Sequence record: MW373745.1
Length of the DNA stretch: 64,000 nt
Strand: one strand, 5' to 3'
Positions 45,629 to 63,707 of this stretch are shown here, piece after piece (position 1 is the first letter of the stretch; each line of letters starts with the position of its first letter). The position numbers were made by a program, and so were the translations under genes. The notes beneath the pieces are model-generated. The model saw nothing but the letters and a program-made list of their open reading frames with translations, did not search any database and was not told the DNA's origin.

Positions 45629-46623
45629 ATCATATTTTAACGATTTCAAACAATTTTTAAAATCTGAAGTTAAAAATGGTAAATTGCCTTATACAACTAT
45701 GTACAAATATTTACTCACGTTTAGCGAATACAGACCTAAAAATTTATACGCGCGATACCGACGTTTACGCAAATACACTAAGGGTGTTATAACGAAATAT
45801 AAATGTTTGCTGCTATACGGTAAAACCGGAGCGCTAAAAAAAATGGACAAGTTATTGTAATAGACAAGCATATACAAATACAAAAGAATATAAAATGAAT
45901 GTGCTGGGTATGAGTGATTATGAAGTAGATTGTTATAATCAATCCAGAGCGGTGACTAAGAAAAATTTAATAATGCGTTACGGTGAAGACCTAGGTAATA
46001 AAAAATGGGAGGATTATAGACATAGACAGGCATACACAAATACAAAAGAATACTTTGTTGAAAAATATGGTGAAATTGTAGGCGAACAGAAATATTATAA
46101 CATCAACGCAAGTAAAGCAATCACTCGTGAAAATCTTATTAAAAAATATGGTGAATACCTAGGTAATGAAAAGTGGCTTAATTTTTTAAATAACAAAAAG
46201 TGTATAGGTTATTCAAAAATGGCTACAAAATTATTTGAAGAATTGGAATCCAAATTAGGAAATAATTATACTTTTTATTATGAACCAAAAACAAGAGAAA
46301 TAGTATTAAATTCTAACGGAACTCCGTATTTTTATGATTGTTATATCAAAGAATTAAAATTAATAATAGAATTTAATGGTGATGTATTTCACGCAAATCC
46401 TAAAATATTTAATAGCCACGACAATCCCAATCCATTTGACAAGACATTGACTACTGAGGAAATATGAGAAGCAGATAATAGAAAAATTAATCACGCTTTA
46501 GATAATGGCTATAAAATTATAATAATTTGGGAAAACGAACTTAGAATTAATACAAATTTAAGTAATATTATTATAGAATATATAAAATCGAATAATTTAT
46601 TAGATTTAAAGGAGTTTATTTGA
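45621..46623 (+). pseudogene. Vsr/DUF559-like homing endonuclease disrupted by a frameshift (A8, ~45836-45843) and a TGA (46465-46467)
   Basis: KW..Y..RQAYTNTKEY repeats continue across the frameshift; YDCY..IIEFNGDVFH then EEI*EADNRKI..ALDNGYKIIIIWE in frame to 46623. Confidence 0.75.
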
Positions 46624-47525
46624 TAGTAACTGAAAATTTCCAAGTAGAATCTTTAGGTATCCAAGAATTAGATGTCTATGATATTGAAGTAGATTCTAAT
46701 CATAATTTTTTTGCTAATGATATATTAGTTCATAACAGTTGTTATGTTCAAGTACCTAATATTATAAACGAAAAATTACCAAAAGACCCACAATTAGCAA
46801 CAGATATAATTGATAAATTTATAGAAACTAAAATACAACCGGTAATTAACACAAGCTCACAAGAATTAGGGTCTATTTTTAATGCTTTAGATGCTTCAAG
46901 AATTTCTGCAAAGCGTGAAGCGATTGCAAGCTCTGCTGTGTTTGTAGCAAAGAAAAGATATTTTATGAAAGTTATAGATTCTGAAGGTGTTAGGTTCAGT
47001 GAACCTTATCTTAAAACAATGGGTATCGATATTGTCAGATCCAGTACACCAGCATTTTCTAAAAAATATCTTAAAAAATCCGTCAATATTATATTAGAAA
47101 GTACAGAAGAAGAACTTAAAGAATGGTTAAAAAATATTAGATCATTATACCTGGGTCAAAATCTAATGGATATTGCTAAGATATCTTCGGTCAGTTCTAG
47201 CAAATATAAACTTGGTGTGGATAAATCCATACCGATTAATTCAAGAGCTTTCTTGGTATCAAATCATTATATAAATAGTCTAAATACAGGTGAGTTTCAA
47301 CCATTAGAATTAGGCGAAAAGGTTCGTATGCTATATCTTAGAGAACCTAACCCATTAAAATCTAACATTTTTGCTTTTAATAATGAAAAATTTGCAAATG
47401 TATTTAAAGATTATATAGATTGGGATACTAATTTTAATAAGTTCTTTTTAAAACCACTTGAAATAATGACAGACCCACTTAATTATAATTTACATAAAGA
47501 AACTGAAACTTTGGAGGAATGGTAA
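46620..47525 (+). CDS. Split intein IntC (39 aa, 46620-46736) fused to DNA polymerase C-fragment
   Basis: VYDIEV..NHNFFAN.ILVHN followed by SCY; AKKRY and MGIDIVRSSTP PolB motifs; AAGGAG RBS, TTG start. Confidence 0.95.
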   Translation: MIVTENFQVESLGIQELDVYDIEVDSNHNFFANDILVHNSCYVQVPNIINEKLPKDPQLATDIIDKFIETKIQPVINTSSQELGSIFNALDASRISAKREAIASSAVFVAKKRYFMKVIDSEGVRFSEPYLKTMGIDIVRSSTPAFSKKYLKKSVNIILESTEEELKEWLKNIRSLYLGQNLMDIAKISSVSSSKYKLGVDKSIPINSRAFLVSNHYINSLNTGEFQPLELGEKVRMLYLREPNPLKSNIFAFNNEKFANVFKDYIDWDTNFNKFFLKPLEIMTDPLNYNLHKETETLEEW

Positions 47526-47755
47526 TGGATATACTCGGTGTTTACAATTATATTAAATCTTATATTTTAAAAGGATACAATTATTTAAAAAGTAATTATT
47601 CTTTTATTACTATAATGATATTATTATTTGGCACTATTTGGTTAGCTTATAATTTATTATTTGCTGTAATTTTTATTGTTTTCTTTTTAATAGGTTCGTT
47701 TGTTTTATTTGCATATCTTGATTCTGCAATAGACGACATTAATTTTAAAAAATAA
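47519..47755 (+). CDS. Small membrane protein
   Basis: Hydrophobic C-terminal half; GAGG RBS. Confidence 0.6.
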   Translation: MVMDILGVYNYIKSYILKGYNYLKSNYSFITIMILLFGTIWLAYNLLFAVIFIVFFLIGSFVLFAYLDSAIDDINFKK

Positions 47756-48534
47756 TGATTAATAGGGCTGTTATAACTAGGTGTTTCAAATATAATGGCT
47801 CTATGTTCGATGCTTTTGAATATTTTTATAGACTTTGGGAATTAGATCCTGATACTAAATTTGTTTCATTGTACAGTCATATCAATAAAGATTTTTTAAG
47901 CATTAAATACAACGTAGATCCAAAATGTTTTGATAATTTTATATATAAAGATCCATATGATTTAGAATTTAACAAAGTTTTATTATTCGATACTCACGAT
48001 TTCTATAATATAAATCACCCAAAATCCCTTAAATTAAATAAGTTATATGTAATCGCTAACAGCACCATAGGGTTCAAAGAAAATACTGAATATTTTGATG
48101 AATATTTTTTAAATAAAAATTATATTAATAAAATATATTATCAGATTCACAGAATATTTAATCATTTAGATAATGTATATGTTAATTGTATGGATAATTG
48201 CTGCAAGAGTTATTTAAATATTCTTAAAATGTATCCGAAAGCAATTATCAAAGATCCTAAAAATAATTTTCAACATTACACAATGACTAAGAATTTTATA
48301 CCGGATATTTACAAGTATTTTAATAAGTACATATATGTTAAAACTGGTAGAACTTATGATAGACACCCAAGACAATTTACAGAATGTGCTTACCAAGGCA
48401 TTGATTGTGAATATATTTCTGAAGGTTCTAAATTCACAAAAAATGATAATTCATATTATAGATTCGAAGATAGATATGATTTTGATAAGAGATCTATATA
48501 CAACGATATAGTTATATCTAAAATGCTCGATTAA
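47755..48534 (+). CDS. Hypothetical protein, possible glycosyltransferase-like; paralog of 12368-13156
   Basis: GSMFDAFEYFY and PRQFTECAYQG. Confidence 0.5.
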   Translation: MINRAVITRCFKYNGSMFDAFEYFYRLWELDPDTKFVSLYSHINKDFLSIKYNVDPKCFDNFIYKDPYDLEFNKVLLFDTHDFYNINHPKSLKLNKLYVIANSTIGFKENTEYFDEYFLNKNYINKIYYQIHRIFNHLDNVYVNCMDNCCKSYLNILKMYPKAIIKDPKNNFQHYTMTKNFIPDIYKYFNKYIYVKTGRTYDRHPRQFTECAYQGIDCEYISEGSKFTKNDNSYYRFEDRYDFDKRSIYNDIVISKMLD

Positions 48535-48565
48535 TACCAAAAATAAATAAGTTAAAAGGTTTATA

Positions 48566-49165
48566 ATGAGATTCTTAGAATATTATAGATTAAAAGAAGC
48601 TGAAGAATTTAGTAGAAATGACATTAAAACCATCGTTAAACAATACAATAAAGTATTCACAAGAATCTTGAATGCAAAATTCTATTTAGTTAATGAGGTT
48701 GAACATTGTACTTCAAATGGTTCAAAATTAATAGGTATTAGATTTGCCAGTGCTGATGGCTATATGATAAGATTTAATTACACTACAAAAAACGCTAAAC
48801 AAATTCAGAAAATTAACAAAGCTACTAAAGAATTTCACGTTGAAAGTATAGATTTTTGGAATCCAATAACTGGACATTTAAATAAACCAAGTATCAGAGT
48901 TTCTGTGATTTCGAGTTTATCTCTCAAATATTTTATAGAAGACATTACAACTTCTATTAAAAAGAATCTTTTAGGAACTTTTTATTATAAAGATCTTAAA
49001 TTTACAGACGATATAAAATCAGAAAAATATGTGATTAACCCAGATGAAATCATATTCATTAATACTAAAGGATTTAAAGAATCCAATGATTTTACATTAA
49101 ATTCACAAGATCCTAATATTCAACTTATACTTAATAACATCAAAGAAGTTTATGGAGAAGCTTGA
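48566..49165 (+). CDS. Hypothetical protein
   Basis: MRFLEY..LKEA leader; overlaps the neck gene. Confidence 0.6.
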   Translation: MRFLEYYRLKEAEEFSRNDIKTIVKQYNKVFTRILNAKFYLVNEVEHCTSNGSKLIGIRFASADGYMIRFNYTTKNAKQIQKINKATKEFHVESIDFWNPITGHLNKPSIRVSVISSLSLKYFIEDITTSIKKNLLGTFYYKDLKFTDDIKSEKYVINPDEIIFINTKGFKESNDFTLNSQDPNIQLILNNIKEVYGEA

Positions 49166-49872
49166 TGAAAAGAATCTTAACCTTATCAGATCTTAGGCAA
49201 TATATCAAGGAAGAACTCGGATATCCACAATTACAAGTTGAACTTACAGATAATCAATTAGACCACTGTATTGAAAAAACAGTTCAAATGTTTTGTAATG
49301 TTGCATATGATGGAGAATTAACAAGATATATAAAATTTGAATGTCAGGGCCAAGGCAATTATTTTGTAGATCCTGAAGTTGAAGAAATATTACAAATATG
49401 CCAAAGTGGTATTTTTGTAGGTTCTGATTTAAATGGATTAATAGATCAAAATCTATCTAATTATATACTATCTACTTCTGGTGTTGCTTTAAGTTACTTA
49501 GTTACTTTAAGTTCTACAAGATCCTTAGTCGACAAATACTTTGGTCAACGTATTAATTTCGAGTTTAACTCTCATAAGGGATTATTATCAATATATCAAA
49601 ATTACCACGGGCCTTTGTTAATTGAAGCTAAATGTAAATACATACCAGATGAACACGATAAAATATATGACCAAGAATGGGTCAAAGCAATGTCTGTGGC
49701 TCAAGCCAGATTGATGCAAAGTGTAGTCTTAGGAAAATATTCAGCACCTTTAATTAATGGTTCGCAAGTTAATTATAGTGATATTAGACAATTAGCCCAA
49801 GATGAAATACAAAGATTAAACGAGGAACTTTCCAATAAATTTACAGAACCTGCTGTATTTATCGTTGGCTAA
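49162..49872 (+). CDS. Neck protein, T4 gp13-like
   Basis: YIKEELGYP.LQVELTDNQLDHCI; C-terminal W....A..Q...LGKY..ING. Confidence 0.8.
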   Translation: MMKRILTLSDLRQYIKEELGYPQLQVELTDNQLDHCIEKTVQMFCNVAYDGELTRYIKFECQGQGNYFVDPEVEEILQICQSGIFVGSDLNGLIDQNLSNYILSTSGVALSYLVTLSSTRSLVDKYFGQRINFEFNSHKGLLSIYQNYHGPLLIEAKCKYIPDEHDKIYDQEWVKAMSVAQARLMQSVVLGKYSAPLINGSQVNYSDIRQLAQDEIQRLNEELSNKFTEPAVFIVG

Positions 49873-49934
49873 ATAATTTTATATTTAAGGAACTCTTAAG
49901 ATATTTTATATTATAATTATCAAAAGGAGATAAT

Positions 49935-50255
49935 ATGAGAGTTTCTAAATACAAAATGTTGAGTTCCTTAAAAGACTCAGAATACAACTTAGTTTTAACA
50001 AATTACAAATACCCACAATCTAAAATAGATTTAGAAGAATTTAACGAGTTTGGAGAACGCTTCTTAAAAGATAATGCAATTATCGATGTTAAAAAACTCA
50101 AAGATCCTGAATTAAATCTTAGATATGATTATGTTTTAATACTTAGAACAAAACTTACTGATACTGCTTTAGAAATTATAAAAGAAGCTTATCCTATGCT
50201 AAAAACTATTGACGAATATAAAGCTTCATTAACAGGAGATTTTAATGAATTATGA
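49935..50255 (+). CDS. Hypothetical protein
   Basis: AAGGAG RBS. Confidence 0.65.
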   Translation: MRVSKYKMLSSLKDSEYNLVLTNYKYPQSKIDLEEFNEFGERFLKDNAIIDVKKLKDPELNLRYDYVLILRTKLTDTALEIIKEAYPMLKTIDEYKASLTGDFNEL

Positions 50256-50919
50256 TAAACTAAATAAAATTGGAATAATTTTGATTATTATTTTATCAGT
50301 TGTTTATTTTATGCTTGATATTAATAATACAAAAGTTAAAAATTTAGAATTTAAAATTCAAGATCTCCAAACAGAACTTAATAAAACCAAAAAAGAATTA
50401 AATGATACCAAAATTAATTTAAATCATTTAAGTTCTAAAGTTCAAGATTTAAAAATATCTTTAATGAAAGATATGTCGTCAATGTATCACTTAAGTGATA
50501 AACAACAATCTCTAATACTTGATGAAATATGGAAACAATCTAAAAAATACAAAATAAATCCAGCATTCTTATACGCAATACTGTGGAAAGAATCAAGATT
50601 TAGAAACGACGTTATCCATAAACCTACTTATGTTAGAACACTTAAAAAAGAAATACAAGCCCAAGGTATGGGTGCTATTGTTTGGGATTTCTGGGGAGAT
50701 AAACTCAAATCTAATACAAGTTTAAAATCTAAAAAAGATCTTAAAAATTGGAAAAAGAATATAGAAGGAACTGCATATATACTTAGTTATTTGAAATCTT
50801 TACCAAAGGTATCTAATACAAAAAATAAGTATGAATCAGCGGCTTCAAGATACTATGGAAAATACCAAGCAAATTACGTGAATAAAACAATGTCAAAATT
50901 TAATGAACTAAACTCTTAA
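50245..50919 (+). CDS. Membrane-anchored lytic transglycosylase (SLT-like)
   Basis: N-terminal TM and coiled coil; AILWKESRF catalytic Glu motif, GMG, NI..TAY.L, Y..K. Confidence 0.65.
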   Translation: MNYDKLNKIGIILIIILSVVYFMLDINNTKVKNLEFKIQDLQTELNKTKKELNDTKINLNHLSSKVQDLKISLMKDMSSMYHLSDKQQSLILDEIWKQSKKYKINPAFLYAILWKESRFRNDVIHKPTYVRTLKKEIQAQGMGAIVWDFWGDKLKSNTSLKSKKDLKNWKKNIEGTAYILSYLKSLPKVSNTKNKYESAASRYYGKYQANYVNKTMSKFNELNS

Positions 50920-51038
50920 TGCTGAAATTAAAGTGGGTTTAAATAACGATTTTGAACCGATATGATTGTCTAATAATTAAGTACATTTTAAGTGCTAATA
51001 TGTTATAATATTGTTAGATTTCAATAGAAAGGAGAACT

Positions 51039-51350
51039 ATGAATGAATTAAGTTTTGTACCAAAATCAGAAATTCTTAATAAATCACAAGAAACTTGTAT
51101 TAAAGAATGCCAAGATATTGTATTTCAAGAAACAAAAGAAGTTTCTAAAGACCTCATATTAGATACATTATTAGGTATGATAGATTCTGTCAAGATTTCA
51201 GATTCTGCAGTTCATATAAAATTCAATAAATCTTTAATCATACAAAGTGAAAACATTGTTTTAGGTGCGGATAATTTAAATATACAACTTGCAGGAAACC
51301 GAGTAGAATTACAACCAAGAATCAAACAAAATCCAAAGGAGATTAAATGA
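51039..51350 (+). CDS. Hypothetical protein
   Basis: AAGGAG RBS. Confidence 0.6.
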   Translation: MNELSFVPKSEILNKSQETCIKECQDIVFQETKEVSKDLILDTLLGMIDSVKISDSAVHIKFNKSLIIQSENIVLGADNLNIQLAGNRVELQPRIKQNPKEIK

Positions 51351-52039
51351 TCACAAAAGATTTCATTAAAGAACTTTCAAAAATGTCGAGTATAACTGAT
51401 AAAGTTATTCTTAAGTATCCAATAACAACATTAAATTCTGAAGCTATAGATATGCTTGTAAATATAGATGCGTCTAAATTAGGATGCCAAGAATTCCCAG
51501 ATACTGGTATATATGAATTAAATAAGTTTGTTCATATGTTCGCATTATTTGATAATCCAGAAATTACAAGAACAAACAATGCAATAGAATTTGAAACACC
51601 GGGTACAAAAAGTGTTTATACAATTTCAGATTTGTCTGTAATGGAAAACTTTGATCAAAAAGCTTCAATTATTGAAAGTTTAGATAATTTTCCAGAAGTT
51701 GCCAGAGTTGACATTAGTATTGAAGTCATAAAACAAATTAAACAAGCTTCAAGTATTTACAACGAATTAAATGTTTTAAGTATAGAAGGTAAATCAAATG
51801 ATTTATATTTGTATTTAGATGCACATAATAGATTTAATTCTTCTAATAATACATTTAGCAAAGAGTTTTTAAATCATTCAACTATGGATTTTAAACTGAA
51901 AATCAATATTGAAAATTTTGTTAAACTGCCGGTAACAAATTATACTTTAAAGATTAAATATAATGAGAGTAAAAACGCATTTAGAATTCTCTTTGAATCT
52001 GAGTTTTCTAAGATTTTGATCTCAAAAATTGCAGATTAA
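51347..52039 (+). CDS. Sliding clamp, T4 gp45-like
   Basis: Size (~230 aa) and residue pattern of gp45; replication context. Confidence 0.7.
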   Translation: MITKDFIKELSKMSSITDKVILKYPITTLNSEAIDMLVNIDASKLGCQEFPDTGIYELNKFVHMFALFDNPEITRTNNAIEFETPGTKSVYTISDLSVMENFDQKASIIESLDNFPEVARVDISIEVIKQIKQASSIYNELNVLSIEGKSNDLYLYLDAHNRFNSSNNTFSKEFLNHSTMDFKLKINIENFVKLPVTNYTLKIKYNESKNAFRILFESEFSKILISKIAD

Positions 52040-52063
52040 AGATTTTACACCAAGGAACAATAA

Positions 52064-52495
52064 ATGGATAATTTAAAACAACTTTCAGCTACGTGTATGC
52101 AAATCTTTATTAAATTAAATGGAATGCATTACTTAGCCAAAGGCAATCAATTTCACAGACTTCACGAAATAACACAAGAATATTATGAATTTTTTCAAGA
52201 GTCGTTTGATACATTCAATGAAAGATTGGTTCAATTGAGTTTAACACCCTGTGTTAATATACAAGAAATCCACGATCTGAAAAATCCATATATTTTAGAT
52301 CTACAAGCTACAAAACTTGATTTGGATACCATAGCTAGCACATTAATAAATGATTTTAAATTAGTTGACAATTCAGTAGCAGTTCTTATTCAAGAAGCTA
52401 TTAAAATTGAAGATACTGTTACAGAAGACATCTTAAGAACATTTAGAATTCGTCTCCAAAAATATATTTGGATGCTCGAATCTATGCAAAGTTAA
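52064..52495 (+). CDS. Dps/ferritin-like protein
   Basis: H...KG.QF..LHE...E.Y, D..NER and KYIWML Dps signature. Confidence 0.8.
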   Translation: MDNLKQLSATCMQIFIKLNGMHYLAKGNQFHRLHEITQEYYEFFQESFDTFNERLVQLSLTPCVNIQEIHDLKNPYILDLQATKLDLDTIASTLINDFKLVDNSVAVLIQEAIKIEDTVTEDILRTFRIRLQKYIWMLESMQS

Positions 52496-52504
52496 GGAGG
52501 TATA

Positions 52505-53284
52505 ATGTTAAAAGAAGATAAATTTATTTGGAGTTTATTTCAGAAAAAATTTCCAGAAGTTTCAAGAGAAGCTTATGAAGATTTTGTAGAAGAATATTTA
52601 AATATCAAACCATTTAAAGCTAGTGAAAATATATTTGAAACCAATCAAAGTATTTCAAACGAAGCTCATTTTATTATGAGAGCATTAGCTACTAAAAAAT
52701 TACAAGAAGTTTTTGAAATACTTAAAATTGATTTAGAAGACCCAAATGTTAAAGCAGATTTTGAAAATGGTAATTTAGGAACACCAGGCAGAGTCATTAA
52801 GCTAATGGCTGGTGCCAACACTGATGATGATACTGAGTGTGGCTCTGGTAGATTTATGAAACCTGTTAGAATAGCAACTTTTCCAAATAAAGACGCAGCT
52901 AAGATTCCAATTACTAAAAGGATTAACATAGCAAGCAATTGTAGTCATCATTTATTACCATTTAATACAGATTTTGCGGAAGATTCCTATGCAATAGTTA
53001 GTTATATACCTAAAGATTATGTTCTGGGTATTTCTAAGTTACAAAGATTAGCAGATTTCGTCTCGAGGCGTTATTGGTTGCAAGAAGATTTGACTAAAGA
53101 AATCTACAATAAAATTAAAGAAGCAGCACAAACTGAAGATGTTTATGTTAAGTTATGTAATATTAAACATACTTGTGAATGGATTAGAGGTGCAAGAAAC
53201 ACTGAGGGGGGATTTACTTCAGAATTCTACGGGGGTGCTTTTGGTGATCCTGAATTAAGAAAACAGGTTCAAATCCGAGTTTAA
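52505..53284 (+). CDS. folE: GTP cyclohydrolase I
   Basis: TP.RV, SNCSHHLLPF, GISKLQRL, LQEDLT, HTCEWIRG. Confidence 0.9.
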   Translation: MLKEDKFIWSLFQKKFPEVSREAYEDFVEEYLNIKPFKASENIFETNQSISNEAHFIMRALATKKLQEVFEILKIDLEDPNVKADFENGNLGTPGRVIKLMAGANTDDDTECGSGRFMKPVRIATFPNKDAAKIPITKRINIASNCSHHLLPFNTDFAEDSYAIVSYIPKDYVLGISKLQRLADFVSRRYWLQEDLTKEIYNKIKEAAQTEDVYVKLCNIKHTCEWIRGARNTEGGFTSEFYGGAFGDPELRKQVQIRV

Positions 53285-53291
53285 TGTTAAT

Positions 53292-53325
53292 ACACTATAG
53301 ATCTTAGCATTTAACACTTTAGTGT
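53292..53325. promoter_or_regulatory. One half-site and one full ACACTTTAGTGT palindrome upstream of the helicase
   Basis: acactatag at 53292; full palindrome at 53314-53325. Confidence 0.5.
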
Positions 53326-53439
53326 AATTTGCTAGATCTTTAGTAAAAAATTTAATTAAATTTTAATCGTTCTTTATATATAATATCATATTAAAAATTT
53401 AAATTTAAATTTTAAAAGTCTAAATCAAAGGAGTTTAAT

Positions 53440-54789
53440 TTGGATAATTTTGAATCGGTTCTTCTAAAAAATATTATAGAATCTAAAGATTTTTTTAATA
53501 AAGTAAGGCCAATCTTAAAACCTAGTATTTTCACAGATTTTGGTAACCAAAAAATCTATGAATTAATAGATAATTTTTATTCTAATTATAATACAACTCC
53601 TAGCATTCAAGAAATAGCACTTCAAATTAAAGATATTCCCAATAAAGAAGCAAGAACCCAGATTGCTACTAAACTTAATGATGCTAGAAACTCAGAAAAT
53701 ATCAATAAAGAATTCTTAGATGATTTAACTGTTAAATTCATTAAGGACCAAATGTTCACAAAAGCATTAATGTTAGGTGCTGAGTTCATTGATAAAAAAG
53801 ATGAAACTTATAAACAAAAAGCCAAAGATCTTATAGATGCTTCACAACTTGTGAATATTCATAAAGATCTTGGTAATGAATATAATAATATAGAAGAACG
53901 CATTGATTATTATCAAAATCCAAGAAAAGGTATCAAATATTTAAGATTCAATACTTTAAATGAGTATATCGGAGAAGGCTTTCTTAACGGAACTTTGAAT
54001 ATTTTTATGGCTCCTGCAGGTATTGGTAAAAGTTTATTAATGAGTACCAGCATTGGTGATTTTCTTAAACAAGGTTTAAATGTATTATTAGTCAGCTTAG
54101 AATTATCTAATTTTGAGTTCTTAAAAAGAATAGATGCTGACTTATTAGATATACAAATTAATGCTTTAAAAGACGTAGACCCTAGTGTTATCAGAACTAA
54201 GTTTGAAGAACTAAAAAGATCTGGTATTGGTAGCTTATATGTTCAAAACTTCCCAGCTGGTTCTTTTAGTTCAAATGATTTAAAATCTTTATTAGAAATG
54301 TATAAAGCTAATAATATAAAATTCGATGCAATATTCTTGGATTACTTAGGCTTGATGAAATCTGATAGAGTTTCTGCAAGTGCAGGTTTATATAGTTATA
54401 TTAAGGCCATTGGTGAAGAAGTTCGTGCTATTGCAGTCACAGAAAATATTCCGATATTTTCTTGTTCTCAATTAAATAGATCAGCTGTAAATAATACAGA
54501 TTCTAACAATGAAGCTATTTCAGATTCTATGGGTACTGCTATGACTGCTGATTGGATTTGTTTCTTATTACAAACTGAAGATCTTAAAAAGAAAAATACT
54601 ATTAGATTTAAAATAACTAAGAATCGTTATAATGGTAGAACTTCAAGTTTTGATATGCATATTAATTATAATAATATGCGTATAGAAGATATAGTTTCAA
54701 ATGATATACAAATGTTAAGTAATGCTGATATTAAAAACGTTCCACAATTAGAAATACAAAAACCTAAAACTGATTGGAACTTTAATTAG
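53440..54789 (+). CDS. Replicative DNA helicase, T4 gp41/DnaB-like
   Basis: APAGIGKS, VSLEL, FLDYLGLM, SQLNR, S.G..MTAD, KNRY. Confidence 0.9.
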   Translation: MDNFESVLLKNIIESKDFFNKVRPILKPSIFTDFGNQKIYELIDNFYSNYNTTPSIQEIALQIKDIPNKEARTQIATKLNDARNSENINKEFLDDLTVKFIKDQMFTKALMLGAEFIDKKDETYKQKAKDLIDASQLVNIHKDLGNEYNNIEERIDYYQNPRKGIKYLRFNTLNEYIGEGFLNGTLNIFMAPAGIGKSLLMSTSIGDFLKQGLNVLLVSLELSNFEFLKRIDADLLDIQINALKDVDPSVIRTKFEELKRSGIGSLYVQNFPAGSFSSNDLKSLLEMYKANNIKFDAIFLDYLGLMKSDRVSASAGLYSYIKAIGEEVRAIAVTENIPIFSCSQLNRSAVNNTDSNNEAISDSMGTAMTADWICFLLQTEDLKKKNTIRFKITKNRYNGRTSSFDMHINYNNMRIEDIVSNDIQMLSNADIKNVPQLEIQKPKTDWNFN

Positions 54790-54803
54790 TCTCATAAAGA
54801 TTG

Positions 54804-55079: not shown

Positions 55080-55090
55080 TTCTAACATTA

Positions 55091-55720: not shown

Positions 55721-55794
55721 ACATAATTTATCATTTTAATAAAGTTAAAGAGTCATCGTATAGAATTAAACTCTATACAATGACTGAATATAAT

Positions 55795-55870
55795 GCCTGA
55801 TTAGCTCAACTGGTAGAGCATTCGCCTTGTAAGCGAAAGGTTGAGAGTTCGAGTCTCTCATTAGGCTCCA
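55795..55870 (+). tRNA. tRNA-Thr (UGU)
   Basis: gcctgat/attaggc acceptor stem, ttcgc-cttgtaa-gcgaa anticodon arm, gagagttcgagtctctc T arm, CCA. Confidence 0.95.
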
Positions 55871-55879
55871 TTGTCCTTT

Positions 55880-56032
55880 ATGTGGGAATTAATCTACGTT
55901 TAAGGGAATTGATAGTTAAGGTAACGGTAAATATGATCGTTGTGGTATTACAGACCTAAGAGCTTCCTTGTAGCTCAAACCTTATAAGTAGACATAAACC
56001 TTATAAGACGTATAGCTTTATATGACCCACAT
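55880..56032 (+). ncRNA. Candidate structured RNA after tRNA-Thr
   Basis: Closing stem atgtggg/cccacat, internal gagct/agctc hairpin, duplicated aaaccttataag. Confidence 0.3.
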
Positions 56033-56048
56033 TTACTAATAAACTTAA

Positions 56049-56729
56049 TTATTCCCATTTAATTTTATCGACAGATTTAACAGTTTCAGATGAATTAATT
56101 TTTTCTTTTAATGTATTCGCTTTAAATATTACTTCCTGAGTATATTCGGTTACTTTTGAAACAAATGTTAAAAATTCTTGAGGTGTAAAATTAACCTTTT
56201 CATCATTCAAGTCAATCCAAGTAATCTCAGTTATTGAATTAGTACCACTTTGTATATCTAACAATATATTAGCGGCCATTCCGTTAATATTAAGTTTATC
56301 CTTTTCCCTAGTTTGGAATGTATGGTCTTTGAATACAAAACCAGATTCTAAAGCTACGTCCCTTTTTGTTTGTATTTCAAACTTCTTCTTTTCTTTAATT
56401 ATATTAAGTTTTTCAGATTCACTTGCAGTATTTAGTACATATTCATAATACAAATCCATAAGATTATTAGCTAAGCAGTATTCTTTGACTGCTTGTGTAC
56501 CCGCTTGAATTTCTTCAGGTGTAATGTCATCTATATGCTTTATGATATACTTATCAGATAAACTTGTATCCGTGGTTAAAGGTCTGTTTAATACACACAA
56601 TTCAGTATTAGCTTCAATAGCCCATTTAATTACATCTGAATTTAATACACCTTGGTCACTTAAAGTTTTTTTTGCTACTATCATTTTTACTCCTATATAT
56701 TTGTTGAAATGTAACCTGATGTTGTCCAT
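56049..56729 (-). CDS. Tail fibre assembly/chaperone protein (DUF4376-like)
   Basis: FQTRE.D..NI, W.D.....FT..EF pattern; follows a fibre gene. Confidence 0.65.
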   Translation of the reverse strand: MDNIRLHFNKYIGVKMIVAKKTLSDQGVLNSDVIKWAIEANTELCVLNRPLTTDTSLSDKYIIKHIDDITPEEIQAGTQAVKEYCLANNLMDLYYEYVLNTASESEKLNIIKEKKKFEIQTKRDVALESGFVFKDHTFQTREKDKLNINGMAANILLDIQSGTNSITEITWIDLNDEKVNFTPQEFLTFVSKVTEYTQEVIFKANTLKEKINSSETVKSVDKIKWE

Positions 56730-58504
56730 TGCCCAGGTGTTTGTGAAAATTTAGTTCCAATATTTCCAGTCATAGCAATGCTAGGATTATTTATTACGCC
56801 TCCACCAACTACCTGTAACCCAACTTTATAATTACCGCTTATATCTATACCTGTATGCCACCATACTGAACTTATCTTTGAATTAGTCGCTGCGCTAATA
56901 GCTACTAGTTTTTCAGGATTATTTGATAAAAATTTAACATTAGCACCTATTTGAAGATTGGCATTTAATACTGATAAATCATAGCATTCTTCAGCTCCTT
57001 GATAATTATTTTGAATATTAATGTTACTCACTTCTATATTTCCTGAGGAAGCTATCACTAAATTAGTGAGTGACATTCCTATTAAATCAACATTATATAT
57101 ACTTCCATTTGTACCAGTAGATATGTATATTGATGAGCAATTGTTAGAAGATGCTCTTATTGTAATATCGTGTATATGAACCTCGCACATCACGATATAT
57201 AACCCAAATTGCGCCCAAGCTGTATTATTTAAATCTATTATAAGTTCATCACTTCTTCCATTTTCACCAACTATATTGACGCCTAAAGGTAAGTTATAAA
57301 ATGTAGTAGGTTTAGTAATAGTATATCCATTCTTTATTTTTAATGTTATATCATATATAGACTTACCATATTTATATATTTCATTAATTGCATCATCTAT
57401 ATTTTCAAAATTACCTCCCTCTCCGACAGTCCATTCTAATTTTTGTGTTAATAATGTAGAGTATCTGTTATCCGCTTGTGTCAACACATCTTGCAATTTA
57501 GTATCGATTTCAGATTTATCATAAACAGATTCGGCACTTGCTTTAAGTTCCATAAAAGAATCTATAGTAGATTTATTATAATATGAATTAAATTTAGTAT
57601 TAATTTCAGATTTATTATAAACATTACTTGTGTTGGCTTTAGTATCTAATTTAGAATCTACTTCAGATTTATTATAATAATTAGATAAATCTACACTTAG
57701 AACTGCATTTTTCCATTTTTTAGTATTTGAATCATATTGTAAAATATGATTGTTTGTCGGGTCAACAATACTTGCATCAATTAAGTTAGCAATACTTGTT
57801 TTATGTGGGTTATTAAAGTCTGTCTTATGAGTATTAATTAAATCTACATTAAAATTCTTTTTGGCGTAAGCTAAATTAATAGCGTGCCAATCACTTGTTG
57901 GGTCTGCAACATTAAATACTTGCGTTTCAGAACCACCCAGATTTGCTTTTGTATTTAAATTATTATTGATGCTAAGAATGTTATTTTCTATATTTTTTTT
58001 AAATTGGGTATACTCACTATACCTAGTATCTTCTAATTCTTTATTTGCAGCAATGGTATTTTCAGCAGTTGTCACTCTTCTTTCTAATTTATAATGTTTA
58101 TCTTCTATATCTTTTTCATTAGTACCTACTGTAGTTTCTAATTTGGTAAGCCTAGAATCATTAGCTTCCTTATAAGTTTCAAAAATTATTTTTCGAAGGA
58201 AATTATCTTCTATATATTTAGAACTGTATAATAAATCTTTTGAAGCTTCTTCTGGATTTTCAGTTGTATGTCTAAAAATTGCTTGAAGATCTATTAATTC
58301 ATCTGATGCTTCCATAGTCTCCTTAGTTTCAGAATCCATACAAATCCAATATTTACCATTAACTATATCGTGAATATTAGCGATATAACTAATACTAGGA
58401 TTTGATTCTTTGCTTATTTTATTAAGTTCTGTTAGAACTTTTTCTTTTAACTGTTCTTTTGTGAGATTTTCTGATATTAAAACATCAACTTTTTTAAATT
58501 GCAT
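56693..58504 (-). CDS. Tail fibre/receptor-binding protein
   Basis: Four YNKSE.D.K repeats; VG.GG.F.NIDDAI followed by a beta-helix-like C-terminus. Confidence 0.7.
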   Translation of the reverse strand: MQFKKVDVLISENLTKEQLKEKVLTELNKISKESNPSISYIANIHDIVNGKYWICMDSETKETMEASDELIDLQAIFRHTTENPEEASKDLLYSSKYIEDNFLRKIIFETYKEANDSRLTKLETTVGTNEKDIEDKHYKLERRVTTAENTIAANKELEDTRYSEYTQFKKNIENNILSINNNLNTKANLGGSETQVFNVADPTSDWHAINLAYAKKNFNVDLINTHKTDFNNPHKTSIANLIDASIVDPTNNHILQYDSNTKKWKNAVLSVDLSNYYNKSEVDSKLDTKANTSNVYNKSEINTKFNSYYNKSTIDSFMELKASAESVYDKSEIDTKLQDVLTQADNRYSTLLTQKLEWTVGEGGNFENIDDAINEIYKYGKSIYDITLKIKNGYTITKPTTFYNLPLGVNIVGENGRSDELIIDLNNTAWAQFGLYIVMCEVHIHDITIRASSNNCSSIYISTGTNGSIYNVDLIGMSLTNLVIASSGNIEVSNINIQNNYQGAEECYDLSVLNANLQIGANVKFLSNNPEKLVAISAATNSKISSVWWHTGIDISGNYKVGLQVVGGGVINNPSIAMTGNIGTKFSQTPGQWTTSGYISTNI

Positions 58505-58513
58505 TTTTCACCT

Positions 58514-58777
58514 TTAAACTAAAGATTTTATAAGTCTATCTATTCTTTTATCCTGAACGATATTATTACTAGTATTATTTATGATCTTACCATCAGAGTT
58601 TATTAAAATAACTCTACCTTGATCTACGTCTGTTACTCTAACATATACTGGTGCACCATCATTTTTAGCAACTAATCCCTGCATTTCATCAACAGCTTCT
58701 TTTGTAATTTGACTTAATGTTTTAGTTGTTTCGTATACGAAATCTATTATTTTTATTTTAGATGCTTCTAATGCCAT
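58514..58777 (-). CDS. Hypothetical protein
   Basis: AAGGA RBS; late-type promoter. Confidence 0.6.
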   Translation of the reverse strand: MALEASKIKIIDFVYETTKTLSQITKEAVDEMQGLVAKNDGAPVYVRVTDVDQGRVILINSDGKIINNTSNNIVQDKRIDRLIKSLV

Positions 58778-58798
58778 TTAATTTTCCTTGTATATTTT

Positions 58799-59488
58799 TT
58801 ACCATTTAGATACTAAATTTTCAAAAGTATCTTGAACTGCATTCTGCGCTGCGCTTAATCCATTTTTTAACATATTACTAAAATATGAACTTGCTTTAGA
58901 TTGTACACTATCATTCCCGGTTGTGTTGGAAGTGCTTGCTAATTGAATATTTTTAATATCTGTATTATCGTGATTTGGTTGGTTCATTTTAAAACTAACA
59001 TTGAATTCTATAATTTCATTGTTATCTTGAGATAATTGTATTTGTGAAACATCTGTCAACAATGCATCCTGCGTCTCCATTACTAAGATGTTTTTAGAAC
59101 CATTGCTTAAATAAACCTGAATTAGCCAAGCACAGACATCATTGTAGTTACCTTTTGAAATTTGAAAAGCATTGACAAATCTACGATACATACTAGCATT
59201 ATCAAAATCTCTGAAGGTCATATCCACTTGGTATACTGGGTCTGCACCACGTGCTAAAACCCAAGTCCCTCCAATTAATAATTCTTCAAATCTACCGGTA
59301 TATTGTGGCAAATTAATACTTTTTAAACAAATATCTATACTATTTTGTGTTTCGGTAGGGTTTCCCCAGTTTATAAGATTTTGGAAAGTAGCATTAATAG
59401 GTTTCATAATAACTATAAAATCAGAGGTTTTACTCCATTTGATAGTATTAATAACACTAGCAAGTTTATTTAAGGTAACAGTTGCCAT
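58799..59488 (-). CDS. Second tail-tube-like protein (gp19/gp54/gp48-type)
   Basis: LKSINLPQY, V.MTFRD, VSQIQLS...IIEFNVSF; AATAAATA promoter. Confidence 0.55.
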   Translation of the reverse strand: MATVTLNKLASVINTIKWSKTSDFIVIMKPINATFQNLINWGNPTETQNSIDICLKSINLPQYTGRFEELLIGGTWVLARGADPVYQVDMTFRDFDNASMYRRFVNAFQISKGNYNDVCAWLIQVYLSNGSKNILVMETQDALLTDVSQIQLSQDNNEIIEFNVSFKMNQPNHDNTDIKNIQLASTSNTTGNDSVQSKASSYFSNMLKNGLSAAQNAVQDTFENLVSKW

Positions 59489-59619
59489 TTATCCTACTTT
59501 TTTGTATATTTATTTTCGATTTTTGGAGCTAACATTTGTCGTTTAAAGGCCATAATTTAAGCTTCTTTTAAGCGGTGTTTAGTTATAATAACTTCAATTA
59601 AAAAGTTAAGGAAATTAAA

Positions 59620-60078
59620 ATGATAATAAAAGAAACCATTTCCTCAACATCTTTTAGAGAATACTTATATGAACAAGCTTTTAGTAAAGATGTAATGATC
59701 TCTAAATTTACTAACAATTCAGACAACATTTTTAATCATATTTTAAAAGTCTTAGTATATGATGATAATTTAAATAATAAAAAACATTTAAGAGAGATGT
59801 CAGGAATAGTAAGATCTTTACAAAACAAAACTATCAAATCAAAAATAACACCGGAAGACTTGTATCATATTTTCTATGGAAATATTGAAGAAGATTCGAA
59901 TCTGAAACAATATATCTTGGATTTAGAGATTAATTACGGTTCTCTTCAAAAATCTAAGCTATCAGAAAATGAGATACATTTCAGACTAGCTAGAATCTTT
60001 AAAAGATTATCAAGTGAGATATTAACAAAGTCATTCAAGTCTTTTGAAAAATATCCAGAACTAAGGGATAGATTTTAA
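59620..60078 (+). CDS. Hypothetical protein, DUF29-like
   Basis: IFNHILK.L.Y...H..EM helix pattern; FREYLYEQA leader. Confidence 0.35.
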   Translation: MIIKETISSTSFREYLYEQAFSKDVMISKFTNNSDNIFNHILKVLVYDDNLNNKKHLREMSGIVRSLQNKTIKSKITPEDLYHIFYGNIEEDSNLKQYILDLEINYGSLQKSKLSENEIHFRLARIFKRLSSEILTKSFKSFEKYPELRDRF

Positions 60079-60178
60079 AACAACAGGCTTTGATATAATT
60101 TATACCCGATTATATCAAAGCTTTAAATACACAAATGATTGAATCATAAATATTTAACCAACGATTAAAGGACTCAAT

Positions 60179-61783
60179 TTGAATTTAGACACTATACATA
60201 TTGTTAAAAATAACGGAGAACGTGAAATATTCGATGCTGAAAAAATACATAAACACTTACATTTTGCTTGTCAAAACCTCGATGTAGATATTATTAGCAT
60301 TATTAAAGATGCTAGATTAAAAATATTTGATGGTGCCAAAAGTGTAGACATACAAGATTCTTTAATTAAATCTGCACAAGAAAAAATCAGTGAAGATTCT
60401 CCAGATTATGAGTTAGTTGCTGGTAGATTATTAAATCAAAAACTCAGAAAAGAAGTTTATAAACAATACACACCATTAGATTTTAAATCACAAGTTAAAG
60501 AACGTATTAAAAAAGGTTTCTATACTGAAGATCTTAATGCTTATAGTGATGAAGAGCTTGACTATTTTGGATCTTTAATTAATTATGAATTAGATAACGA
60601 ACTACCTTACAGCGCATTAAATCAAATGTATTCTAAGTACTTGATCAAACATAATAAAAAATGCATTGAGGTTCCTCAAGAAGTTTTTATATTGATACCA
60701 ATGGCTATTTTTTATAATACCGATATAGAATATAGAAAAAAATATGTTAAACTTGGGTATGAATTATTATCACAGCGTAAAATTTCTTTACCTACTCCTA
60801 TTATGAATGGAGCAAGAACAAGTTATAAGAAATTTATATCTTGTAATTTATTAAACTTTGGTGATTCAGTTGAAAGCTTTGCTAGGGGTTTAGAAGCTGT
60901 TTTAAAATGCACCAGTGCTAAAAGTGGTTTAGGTATCAATACAAGTTTCATCAGAGGTTTAGGAGCTCCAGTAGGTAAACCTTCAAGATTAGATCATACT
61001 GGTATGCTGCCGATCGTTAAAGCCATTGAATCTGCTACGTCTGCGCTGATTCAGCACGGCAGGGGCGGTGCAAGCAATCTGTCAATGCCTTTCTTTCACT
61101 ACGAAATAGAATTATTTTCACAACTAGGTGATTCTAAAGGATCTTTAGAAAATAGGGCTAGACATACTGATCAAACTATTATCATCAATAAATGGTTCTT
61201 AGAAAAAGCTCTTAATAAAGAGGATATATTTTTATTCCATATGAATGCTGTAGGTAATAAGGATCCCAAATTAGATTTATATGATGCCTTAGGTGATTAT
61301 AAAAGATTCGATGAATTATATAAACATTATAGCGCTAAAGTTCCTAATAAAAGTAAAAAGAAAATTAATGCTTATGATTTATTATCTTTAATTATAAATG
61401 AGAGAATGATTACTGGTAGAGTTTATATTGTTTTTGCGGATAACTTCGTTAATTCAAGTTTTAAAGAAAATCTATATATGACAAATCTTTGTTGTTTAGC
61501 AGGTGATACAATTGTTGAAACTTCACAAGGGCCTAAATTTCTCAAAGATATTAAAAAAGGAGATCTTGTTTTAAGTTATAATCAAGATACAAAAAAATAT
61601 GAATACAAAGAAGTACTAGCAGCTGTTTTAACAAATCCGGAAGCTGAAGTTTTTGAAGTAGAATTCAATGGTAAAGTGGTCATTTGCACTAGTGATCATA
61701 AATTCTTAACCCAAAGGGGTTATATTGAAGCTCAACATCTTTTAGAAAGTGATACAATAGTAGAATGTTCCTCCCGTATTTAG
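60179..61783 (+). CDS. nrdA: Class Ia ribonucleotide reductase alpha N-fragment fused to split intein IntN (61493-61780, 96 aa)
   Basis: ATP cone, PTPIMNGART, SCN, GRGGA; TNLC followed by CLAGDT...CTSDHKFLT.RG intein. Confidence 0.93.
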   Translation: MNLDTIHIVKNNGEREIFDAEKIHKHLHFACQNLDVDIISIIKDARLKIFDGAKSVDIQDSLIKSAQEKISEDSPDYELVAGRLLNQKLRKEVYKQYTPLDFKSQVKERIKKGFYTEDLNAYSDEELDYFGSLINYELDNELPYSALNQMYSKYLIKHNKKCIEVPQEVFILIPMAIFYNTDIEYRKKYVKLGYELLSQRKISLPTPIMNGARTSYKKFISCNLLNFGDSVESFARGLEAVLKCTSAKSGLGINTSFIRGLGAPVGKPSRLDHTGMLPIVKAIESATSALIQHGRGGASNLSMPFFHYEIELFSQLGDSKGSLENRARHTDQTIIINKWFLEKALNKEDIFLFHMNAVGNKDPKLDLYDALGDYKRFDELYKHYSAKVPNKSKKKINAYDLLSLIINERMITGRVYIVFADNFVNSSFKENLYMTNLCCLAGDTIVETSQGPKFLKDIKKGDLVLSYNQDTKKYEYKEVLAAVLTNPEAEVFEVEFNGKVVICTSDHKFLTQRGYIEAQHLLESDTIVECSSRI

Positions 61784-62139
61784 AAGAAATAACATATTTA
61801 GATAAACCGAATAAACATAATCTTAATTTCTTTAGAAAAACATATTTAATGGATTTCTTTGAATTAGGATTAGTATTCGACGAAAATGAAGATTTAATTG
61901 GTATTAAAAATGAAGATACTACATCAGGCTATTTACCACTACATTTTAATAGTATATTAGAACTCTCAGAGTTTTTATATGCTTTTAATGGCGCGTGGGT
62001 AGCAAAGAAAGTATTGGATGATTGCCAGAAAATGGATATGGTGATTAAGCAAATGTCTGAAGAACTCGGTATACCAGAAGAGGTTATTAGAAATGGCAAG
62101 TTTCAAAGAAAGGGCTATTTTAAGAATGGCTACATTTAG
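61765..62139 (+). CDS. Hypothetical protein inside the split nrdA
   Basis: 124-aa ORF overlapping both neighbours; no nuclease motif recognised. Confidence 0.6.
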   Translation: MFLPYLEEITYLDKPNKHNLNFFRKTYLMDFFELGLVFDENEDLIGIKNEDTTSGYLPLHFNSILELSEFLYAFNGAWVAKKVLDDCQKMDMVIKQMSEELGIPEEVIRNGKFQRKGYFKNGYI

Positions 62140-62644
62140 ACACAATAACTTGTTATATTATGTTATAATTGAAAGGAGAAGGGGTGTCAAAGGTGACCAT
62201 ACTTGTGTAGAACCACATTTTGGTGCTTTTGTAACTGATATAGAAAATATCTTAAAAATTTCTGATACTAAGCAATTGTTGTTACAACTCAAACACAGAA
62301 AGGATATTTTAAAGATTTTAAACCCAGATAAAATAGAAACAAATTCTCAATTAGTTTTATCCTATGTATTAAGTGTTCTAAGAGATTATATTAAAGAACA
62401 TTATACATTGTTTATTAAGCTTGTGACTAATGAAGAATTAATGAAAAAATATATAAAATTATTACCTTATGTTTGTACTGATTTAAAGTATACTCCTATA
62501 GATATTTCAAATGAAATTAGAACGGATTTTGATGGAACTAGGAAGCGTTTTCTTGTGCTATTGCTCAGAAAATCAAAAGATTTAGACAAACAAGATGTAC
62601 TAAAATCACTTAGTAATATCAATTTAAGTAATTATATATTATAA
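62093..62644 (+). CDS. Hypothetical protein inside the split nrdA; paralog of 22705-23292
   Basis: EPHFG.F and VLSYVLSVL.DY. Confidence 0.65.
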   Translation: MASFKERAILRMATFRHNNLLYYVIIERRRGVKGDHTCVEPHFGAFVTDIENILKISDTKQLLLQLKHRKDILKILNPDKIETNSQLVLSYVLSVLRDYIKEHYTLFIKLVTNEELMKKYIKLLPYVCTDLKYTPIDISNEIRTDFDGTRKRFLVLLLRKSKDLDKQDVLKSLSNINLSNYIL

Positions 62645-62663
62645 TAACAATAAAAGAGGTGCT

Positions 62664-63707
62664 ATGATAAAAATAACTAAAAAAACTGAAAAAATACCTG
62701 TATACGATATAGAAGTTAAGGATAATCATAACTTTTTTGCAAATGGATTGTGTGTTCACAATTGTGAAATATCTGTGCCTAGTCATAGTTTAGATAATTA
62801 TAGGGGTATACCAGGAGAACTAGGAACTTGTATCTTAGGTAATATAAATTTTGGACATTCTAAAGAATCTGACATCCCAAAAGTTGCTGATTTCTTAGTT
62901 AGGTTCTTAGATAATATGATTGATATTTCTGATTTTGCTATGCCAGAAATTGAATACTCAGCTACAAAACGTAGAACATTAGGTATTGGTGTTTCTAACT
63001 TATTTGGATATCTTGCTAAATCGAAATTATTTTACAATACAAAAGAAGCACGCGAACATATTAATGATTTAATGGAATTATTTTATTTTAACTTAGTTAA
63101 AACTTCAATAGATTTAGCAAAAGAACGAGGTGCTTGTGAATTATATAATGAATCTTTTTATAGTGATAATAAGTTTATATTCGAAAGATATTTAGAAGCT
63201 GGGATTAAACCTGAATTTAAAACAAAATTAGATTGGGAGTCACTTCGTGAAGAATTATCTAAATACGGTATGCGCCATTCAAGCTTGTCAGCTGTACCGC
63301 CCGCTGGGAACAGTTCAAAGCCAAGCTCAGCAACACCTGGTATCGAACCTCCAAGAGAATTAGTAACTATTAAAACAGAAAAAAGTTCTACTGTAAAACA
63401 GTTGGTTCCTTTCTATAAAACAGCCAAAAAATATTATACGACTGCTTGGGGTGTTGACTTTAATAATAAAGATTATCTTAAATTAGTGAGTACAATACAA
63501 AGATATGTAGATCAAAGTATTAGTACAAATCAATATTATAATATCGTAGAAACTAAAAAAGTTAATATTGAAGATGTTATAGAAGAATTTATAGAATGCT
63601 TCAATTTAGGTGTCAAATCATTGTATTATGCTAATTTTAGAACTACAGATGATGCAGATGGTGATCAAGTAATTGAAGGTTGTGGGTCTGGAGGTTGTAG
63701 CGTTTAA
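62664..63707 (+). CDS. nrdA: Split intein IntC (33 aa, 62664-62762) fused to NrdA C-fragment
   Basis: VYDIEV..NHNFFANG..VHN followed by CEI; TCILG, RRTLGIG, PPAGNSS, KSLYY and C-terminal CGSGGC. Confidence 0.93.
   Translation: MIKITKKTEKIPVYDIEVKDNHNFFANGLCVHNCEISVPSHSLDNYRGIPGELGTCILGNINFGHSKESDIPKVADFLVRFLDNMIDISDFAMPEIEYSATKRRTLGIGVSNLFGYLAKSKLFYNTKEAREHINDLMELFYFNLVKTSIDLAKERGACELYNESFYSDNKFIFERYLEAGIKPEFKTKLDWESLREELSKYGMRHSSLSAVPPAGNSSKPSSATPGIEPPRELVTIKTEKSSTVKQLVPFYKTAKKYYTTAWGVDFNNKDYLKLVSTIQRYVDQSISTNQYYNIVETKKVNIEDVIEEFIECFNLGVKSLYYANFRTTDDADGDQVIEGCGSGGCSV

Follow-up and report, generated by a model that had tools for sequence, protein, structure and literature searches.

Two probable fractured genes in a Campylobacter phage: co-resident split inteins of separate lineage with probably inherited orthogonality

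Two split inteins in one phage genome

Campylobacter phage CJLB-13 carries two split inteins, one in the gene for its family-B DNA polymerase (Pol) and one in the gene for NrdA, a class Ia ribonucleotide reductase (RNR). The phage is a Firehammervirus. The stretch under study, called the window throughout, comprises 64,000 nucleotides of its sequence record, MW373745.1, to which both loci are 100% identical. The polymerase is encoded as two open reading frames (ORFs), an N-half at 43421-45628 and a C-half at 46620-47525. NrdA is likewise divided into an N-half at 60179-61783 and a C-half at 62664-63707. Stop codons end both N-terminal intein fragments (IntN), and the C-terminal fragments (IntC) have their own starts, on separate ORFs. 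The presence of two split inteins in one genome had been proposed in a first-pass annotation made from the sequence alone, and this co-residence is borne out. The span singled out there, 46620-62762, opens with the Pol IntC and closes where the NrdA IntC ends, and the features that were quoted are present at the places given.

The explanation preferred here, which as a whole is very probable, is that Pol and NrdA are 'fractured genes', both of them essential replication genes of Firehammervirus. A split intein cuts each gene at a catalytic motif, within DTD/S in Pol and at NLC/C in NrdA (the slash marks the splice junction). Free-standing ORFs separate the two halves of each gene, and the halves would be translated separately. 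Cognate IntN and IntC would meet via a strand-to-strand charge zipper and fold as one HINT domain. Trans-splicing would then restore intact polymerase and NrdA. The two inteins belong to separate lineages, the Pol intein being of the cysteine-less PolB1 type (Ser1/Ser+1) and the NrdA intein NrdJ-1-like (Cys1/Cys+1). Mis-pairing would be disfavoured by the ~77% divergence of the IntN halves together with like-charge repulsion in both non-cognate combinations. Orthogonality would have been brought in by the two lineages, not evolved in this phage.

Family searches identify all of the parts. Pfam places polymerase and RNR domains on the expected halves and Intein_splicing on all four. Intein models from Pfam and NCBIfam together match four of four halves, and the curated NCBIfam cut-offs are passed by three. 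These cut-offs are 24.5 bits for TIGR01445, which describes the intein N-terminal region, and 15.6 bits for TIGR01443, which covers 24 positions at the C-terminus. The splice boundaries of both inteins are set by the uninterrupted alleles of phage CP220. A third intein was sought in the window with phmmer and with a six-frame scan for the block F/G pattern, and none was found.

The Pol split intein

The N-extein of the polymerase (43421-45280, + strand) contains the Pfam domains DNA_pol_B_exo1 and DNA_pol_B and ends in ...YNDTD at the boundary given by CP220 pol. The IntN that follows (45281-45628, + strand; residues 45281-45625) is 115 aa long. It begins with Ser1 (SVVGD), contains TEDH as block B and a single cysteine, Cys43, and runs into a stop codon. 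TIGR01445 scores it at 29.6 bits, above the cut-off, and it matches the Aes123 PolB1 intein (PDB 9hth) with an E-value of 3e-23. That entry is cited in the paper on the crystal structure of the cysteine-less Aes123 PolB1 split intein. The IntC (46620-46736, + strand) has a TTG start, an acidic head and 39 aa ending in ...VYDIEVDSNHNFFANDILVHN, the final residues being VHN; it reaches 32.2 bits with TIGR01443, again above the cut-off. The C-extein (46737-47525, + strand) starts with SCYVQVP, Ser being +1, and is 98% identical to residues 620-882 of CP220 pol. The uninterrupted CP220 allele reads ...GDTDSNYVQVP... where the window has ...NDTD/S...VHN/SCYVQVP..., and the Pol intein is therefore of the Ser1/Ser+1 kind.

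This intein, related to Aes123 PolB1, is the published and biochemically active CP21 PolB1 split intein of a sister phage. A 2025 paper gives the CP21 intein an IntN of 115 aa, an IntC of 39 aa, Ser1/Ser+1 and a single Cys43; the CP21 and Aes123 PolB1 inteins are work of the Mootz laboratory (PMC12707363, PMC11923092). CP21 PolB1 is 52% identical to Aes123 PolB1, and its halves trans-splice in vitro (37 °C, half-time ~36 s). The window IntN is 98% identical to that of CP21 (two substitutions), and the IntC is identical except for the start codon. The window intein has the marks of the cysteine-less PolB1 class: positions 1 and +1 are both Ser, a catalytic Cys is absent, and the sequence is homologous to Aes123 PolB1. 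Since it shares the features of CP21 PolB1, the Pol half of the finding is already known, and active. Inactivity of one intein, which had been raised as a way in which the pairing question would lapse, does not apply to Pol at the splicing rate recorded for CP21.

The exteins beside the Pol intein (45260-45280 and 46737-46780) differ between intein-bearing and empty alleles. Among the differences is a Gly to Asn change within Y-G-DTDS, a polymerase motif of high conservation; CC_R7 is intermediate. These flanking differences look like a co-conversion tract or target-site immunity.

The NrdA split intein

The NrdA N-extein (60179-61492, + strand) comprises the ATP-cone, the all-alpha domain and the first half of the barrel, as assigned from Pfam, the CP220 allele and alignment to solved R1 proteins. 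It ends in ...TNLC, the last residue being the thiyl-radical Cys. The IntN (61493-61783, + strand; residues 61493-61780) has 96 aa. It begins with Cys1 (CLAGD), continues through TSDH as block B and an acidic strand, and ends at a stop codon. Besides Intein_splicing it matches Pfam PT-HINT, at 36.9 bits against a cut-off of 27.7, and with 23.5 bits it lies just under the TIGR01445 cut-off. Its nearest match is the NrdJ-1 intein (8ubs, E 4e-8), followed by gp41-1 and the DnaX/DnaE inteins. The IntC (62664-62762, + strand) has a Lys-rich head and 33 aa ending in ...VYDIEVKDNHNFFANGLCVHN, again finishing with VHN, and scores 39.1 bits with TIGR01443, above the cut-off. The C-extein (62763-63707, + strand), recognized by Pfam Ribonuc_red_lgC (E 2e-56) and by the CP220 allele, starts with CEISVP and so with Cys+1.

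CP220 NrdA reads ...TNLCCEISVP... where the window has ...TNLC/C...VHN/CEISVP.... This allele is empty at the site in question, called site b below, and the NrdA intein is therefore of the Cys1/Cys+1 kind. The first Cys of NLCCEI aligns with the conserved NLC motif of solved R1 proteins, which places the intein one residue past the thiyl-radical Cys. The NrdJ insertion point of Dassa et al. (2009; PMC2677866) is the same, one residue downstream of their NrdA point. Alleles that lack the site-b intein, CP220 nrdA included, already have Cys at +1, a residue that varies in solved R1 proteins. This Cys either remains as the footprint of an intein once present or was pre-adapted as a target.

Relatives of the NrdA intein also occur outside the genus. 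Split N-halves are 56% identical to it (P0208, P0209), and a contiguous b-type mini-intein occupies the same site in an NrdA of 864 aa (P0210). One homologue lies one residue upstream (P0212), and another copy interrupts a terminase (P0213). Judged from its sequence, the NrdA split intein of Campylobacter phages, earlier read as gene decay, looks functional, conserved and NrdJ-1-like, and it is probably active. A literature search returned no trans-splicing data on the NrdA intein.

Similar tails and partner choice

The case for a natural orthogonality problem had been built on near-identical C-terminal tails. The likeness itself is confirmed: the last 21 residues of the Pol and NrdA IntC are identical at 16 positions, far above chance for random peptides. 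In both halves blocks F/G end in His-Asn, followed by Ser in Pol (VHN/S) or Cys in NrdA (VHN/C). The C-terminus of the cis-splicing Spirulina DnaX mini-intein (7cfv) agrees with the NrdA tail at 17/21 positions and with the Pol tail at 16/21. In phmmer comparisons the two IntC score 30.9 and 29.2 bits against the DnaX intein, versus 27.9 and 27.0 bits against the co-resident IntC. The pattern ...NHNFFAN..L.HN recurs in NrdJ-1, in gp41-1 and in the HINT domain of a bacterial ADP-ribosyltransferase. With TIGR01443, both tails score about twice the curated cut-off. The tails resemble each other because both lie near the consensus of that family. Recent gene conversion between them was considered and ruled out: the same codon is used at eight of the 16 shared residues, and 9.8 are expected from local codon usage. 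Codon identity does not exceed expectation, and the likeness is therefore kept at the protein level rather than owed to a recent copy. What the two tails share is the catalytic block F/G motif of class-1 inteins, which contributes little to the choice of partner. This motif is present in most inteins, including pairs that are orthogonal by experiment, and the problem drawn from the tails dissolves.

The remaining parts of the two inteins diverge. IntN begins with Ser in Pol and Cys in NrdA, as the first-pass annotation had it, and the two IntN halves are 23% identical, essentially in blocks A and B. The N-terminal parts of IntC, described there as acidic versus Lys-rich, do carry net charges of -4 (Pol) and +3 (NrdA). 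For whole halves the net charges are +3 for Pol IntN and -8 for Pol IntC, as against -5 for NrdA IntN and +1 for NrdA IntC. Windows of 20 residues along IntN rise to between +4 and +5 in Pol and fall to -4 in NrdA. In the IntN alignment, Lys residues alternate along the strand directly before block B in Pol, and Glu residues do so in NrdA. Charge polarity is thus inverted, the Pol intein combining a Lys-rich IntN with an acidic IntC and the NrdA intein an acidic IntN with a Lys-rich IntC. On these sequences, like charges would meet in both non-cognate IntN/IntC combinations. The earlier suggestion that short divergent segments enforce pairing is supported in part: these segments are the plausible specificity determinants, with charges inverted between the two inteins both in the head of IntC and in the IntN strand that matches it.

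Published work provides the frame for this comparison. Two polarity classes of fractured genes were recognized by Dassa et al. (2009; PMC2677866), and the Pol and NrdA inteins correspond to these two. The gp41-1 structure contains a β3/β6 'charge zipper', the arrangement recognized here, with a polarity opposite to that of Npu DnaE. Split inteins that are not allelic generally prove orthogonal, as did 15 of 16 in one screen. The inteins gp41-1, gp41-8, IMPDH-1 and NrdJ-1 are mutually orthogonal, and so are two PolB split inteins with 35% identity. Orthogonality of unrelated split inteins is accordingly the documented norm.

Both intein pairs are presumably produced together. The T4 replication and nrd genes serve as the model, and by likeness to them co-expression of Pol and NrdA is expected. 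No terminator-like site was seen between the halves of either gene. The T4-type late promoter TATAAATA was considered near the intervening ORFs (compare Dassa et al. 2009) and is absent from those regions. In the window as a whole this octamer is depleted, with 11 sites versus 30.7 expected from shuffles. A scan for sigma-70 promoters gave 158 hits versus 130 expected and is uninformative at 27% GC. The literature search found no transcriptome or proteome of a Firehammervirus infection.

Weighing the alternatives

Several points weigh against the explanation preferred here. The yield of CP21 PolB1 splicing is only ~40%, because the IntN precursor aggregates in vitro. With 16/21 identical residues, the tails lie at the upper end of what two different inteins show. 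In Npu DnaE, a charge-swapped IntN still spliced with the wild-type IntC, and charge polarity is therefore insufficient as proof of specificity. A C-terminal fragment of 16 residues is enough for splicing in the same system. Finally, earlier papers regarded nrdA of phage CPt10 as a disrupted remnant or pseudogene.

The last of these points leads to the alternative that survives best. The NrdA locus of the window might be a decaying pseudogene, as proposed for CPt10, in which case only the Pol intein would function and no pairing problem would arise. The host has its own RNR, and phage NrdA may be dispensable; the intervening ORFs of the window have suffered a deletion; and the shortfall of the NrdA IntN against TIGR01445 points the same way. 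Against decay, at least eight phages, the window and at least seven others, have the two half-ORFs intact, and several independent metagenome contigs preserve the same architecture. The intein retains all its catalytic residues, from Cys1 and the TxxH of block B to the terminal HN and Cys+1. Throughout the genus the IntC protein is invariant (100% conserved); its codons differ by up to three synonymous and 0 nonsynonymous changes. A pseudogene is highly unlikely on this evidence.

A second alternative grants activity to both inteins and supposes that the pairs cross-react meaningfully. Chimeras would then be a tolerated cost, or a regulatory link between replication and deoxynucleoside triphosphate (dNTP) supply. 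The identity of the tails and the shortness of both IntC halves would suit such a model, and partner choice in Npu DnaE is not fixed by the strand charge network alone. Cross-reaction is indeed known among allelic DnaE inteins. In the known cases, however, the inteins are allelic to one another or split in an atypical way, and inteins of different families have proved orthogonal in tests. The IntN halves of Pol and NrdA are only ~23% identical, and like charges would be opposed in both non-cognate pairs. Each intein is also found without the other, its sequence unchanged, in viable sister phages, and no dependence or adaptation is therefore visible. Pol-NrdA chimeras had been envisaged as dead ends or regulators, and nothing in the analysis points to them. 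Meaningful cross-reaction must be rated very improbable.

Least probable, and disfavoured, is the idea that orthogonality was selected in this phage lineage after a second split intein arrived: the exact inversion of charge in the interacting strands would suit it, but the acidic Pol IntC already occurs in the Aeromonas-phage relative, the N-negative/C-positive polarity is ancestral among NrdA and NrdJ split inteins, phage WX1 (see below) has two co-resident split inteins of equal polarity, and the NrdA IntN and IntC are DNA-identical in the window and in CJLB-12, whose Pol site is empty, so that there is no sign that orthogonality evolved in place. The 'evolved orthogonal pair' of the first-pass annotation accordingly gives way to separate lineages with polarities already described in 2009.

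Fractured genes of two lineages therefore remain the preferred explanation. The two inteins are probably orthogonal, and this property was inherited rather than evolved in the phage. We infer that an absence of cross-splicing, due to orthogonality that existed before the inteins came together, is the best account of the data.

Site states across the genus

Three intein sites are polymorphic in Firehammervirus. Their states were read directly in the fetched loci, and other records were assigned by the share of the query covered. The Pol site is empty in CP220, CPt10, CP20, IBB_35, WX1, CJLB-12 and CJLB-14. It holds a contiguous mini-intein of 153 aa in CC_R7 (pol coding sequence 316-3423), and it is split, with one or more ORFs between the halves, in the window, F379 and CP21. 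Site b of NrdA (NLC/C) is empty in CP220, CJLB-14 and CP21; it is split around ORFs in the window, F379, CJLB-12, CPt10, CP20, IBB_35, WX1 and CC_R7, and none in the genus has a contiguous mini-intein there. A further NrdA site, c (AGN/S), is empty in the window, F379, CJLB-12 and CJLB-14. Contiguous mini-inteins (146 aa, as in CP220) occupy it in CP220, CPt10, IBB_35 and CC_R7, and split versions with ORFs between the halves are present in CP21 and WX1.

Each of the three sites thus has empty alleles and a contiguous counterpart in some relative, for site b the one outside the genus (P0210). Both window inteins are split at the endonuclease-insertion loop, and the contiguous natural versions join at that loop, as seen in CC_R7 for Pol and in P0210 for the NrdA b-type. 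The presence/absence polymorphism in the genus fits mobility. Co-residence of two split inteins is common in the genus: the window and F379 combine Pol with NrdA site b, CP21 combines Pol with site c, and WX1 combines sites b and c.

The most elaborate arrangement is that of vB_CjeM_WX1 (WX1; L008, 325-5482). Its NrdA consists of three separately encoded polypeptides (534, 324 and 166 aa) that two different split inteins would join; the middle one opens with an IntC and closes with an IntN. Gene order and sizes are repeated in an independent Logan contig (L014, 255-5403). In WX1 the b and c inteins are both N-negative/C-positive, and their tails are quite different. Since they are equal in polarity, specificity would have to lie outside simple electrostatics. 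This co-residence, outside the window, is a sharper natural pairing problem than that of Pol and NrdA. It is quite possible, if something short of probable, that Firehammerviruses hold a naturally co-resident trio of split inteins, at Pol, NrdA b and NrdA c, each orthogonal to the other two, and with it a cis-to-trans intein series.

Intervening genes and genomic setting

Between the Pol halves lies a Vsr-like (I-Bth0305I-type) free-standing homing endonuclease gene (45621-46622, + strand), which is broken. In CP21 (P0001) and in many metagenome contigs the same region is a single intact ORF of 333 aa. Compared with CP21, the gene has two single-base frameshifts, in the window and identically in F379. 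On account of these the endonuclease is probably dead in the window, while the split intein must still work. The UniRef name of the intact relative is 'VSR endonuclease', and some of the 227 relatives of the 333-aa protein are named very-short-patch repair endonuclease. A profile built from 36 of them matches Escherichia coli Vsr weakly (E 0.04). An AlphaFold (AF2) model of the intact CP21 relative has a mean predicted confidence (pLDDT) of 91.8 and consists of N-terminal helical repeats and a C-terminal α/β domain. In a Foldseek search of the PDB, the C-terminal domain matches Vsr (1vsr) with a probability of 0.99-1.0 and the catalytic domain of I-Bth0305I (3r3p_B) with a probability of 0.99 and a template-modelling (TM) score of 0.68 on the target. 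According to the model, the intact CP21 relative has a Vsr-fold catalytic domain; the window copy is without an uninterrupted one. The Pol-locus endonuclease (L002, 2726-3727) shows weak helical-repeat similarity (BLASTP E ~4e-4) to a 372-aa ORF in the split site c of NrdA (L008, 3874-4992), and the two may be distant relatives.

Two overlapping ORFs separate the NrdA halves. ORF 1 (61765-62139, + strand) encodes 124 aa in the window and 113 aa in relatives. ORF 2 (62093-62644, + strand), a near-ORFan, encodes 183 aa and 217 aa, respectively; the lengths of 113 and 217 aa are those of F379, WX1 and CC_R7. Relative to F379, one deletion of 102 bp is found in the window and one of 83 bp in CJLB-12. 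Sequence searches of Pfam, PHROGs, NCBIfam and PDB gave no family match and no recognizable nuclease. An exhaustive HMMER search of 1.8 billion representatives returned two distant relatives only. Foldseek searches of PDB and BFVD with an AF2 model (pLDDT 75) gave nothing convincing; GNAT-like structural matches were rejected as unconvincing, with TM scores of ~0.3. Both ORFs (61765-62644) count as near-ORFans, with an invariant EPHFG motif and a predicted α/β fold. From their position alone, the ORFs are candidate mobility genes.

Both loci are on the + strand, ~12.6 kb apart, with a minus-strand block in between. The stretch from Pol to NrdA includes genes for a DnaB-like helicase, GTP cyclohydrolase I, a ferritin-like protein and an SLT transglycosylase. 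Both loci are 99-99.9% identical to phage F379, and the Pol locus is 99% identical to CP21. Close annotated relatives are placed in the genus Firehammervirus of the T4-like Eucampyvirinae. The window has a GC content of ~27%. The CJLB-13 record is unannotated and 210 kb long; its relatives measure 157-183 kb. A QueC-like gene (42631-43290) and the GTP cyclohydrolase I gene (52505-53284) flank replication genes, which fits 7-deazaguanine DNA modification in this phage group.

Relation to known systems

The two split genes of the window are probably fractured genes of a known kind, and one has already been characterized; the polymorphism across the genus and the three-piece NrdA are of greater interest. 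In the window, an NrdA split intein with Cys1/Cys+1 co-resides with a cysteine-less Pol intein. New here are the three-piece NrdA with two split inteins and the empty, contiguous and split states at three sites. These states, together with the three-piece NrdA, make the genus useful for the study of intein evolution, and its inteins are a source of orthogonal pairs for protein engineering.

The closest known system is that of CP21 PolB1 and Aes123 PolB1, which corresponds to the Pol intein in the lengths of IntN and IntC, in Ser1/Ser+1 and in the one non-conserved cysteine, Cys43. The window differs from CP21 in the two IntN substitutions and in the endonuclease gene, intact in CP21 and frameshifted here. 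Among homing endonucleases, the I-Bth0305I/Vsr-like (EDxHD) family (PMC3239194; 3r3p) is the nearest counterpart of the Pol-locus gene, a Vsr fold being predicted for the C-terminal domain of the intact relative of 333 aa. The E-values are weak, however (0.04-0.13), the N-terminal two thirds are helical repeats without a solved counterpart, and the window copy is broken.

The fractured genes of Dassa et al. (NrdJ-1, NrdA-2 and gp41-1) provide the general model. They too are replication and nucleotide-metabolism genes of T4-like phages, with N-half, free-standing ORF(s) and C-half in the same order on one strand and with opposite charges on the interface strands. The Vsr-like endonuclease family, represented here at the Pol locus, was first described with them. 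Those genes came from a marine metagenome, whereas the present pair belongs to a cultured Campylobacter phage. The NrdJ-type insertion point is found here in a class Ia NrdA, unlike their NrdJ, and the NrdA-locus ORFs fall in no known endonuclease family, unlike the free-standing endonucleases reported there.

Engineered orthogonal sets (Pinto et al. 2020, PMC7090010; Protein Sci 2024, PMC11168065) likewise place several split inteins side by side without cross-reaction, and in them partner choice lies outside the block F/G tail. Those sets were assembled by people, whereas in CJLB-13 two split inteins live together naturally, and sister phages extend the set to three.

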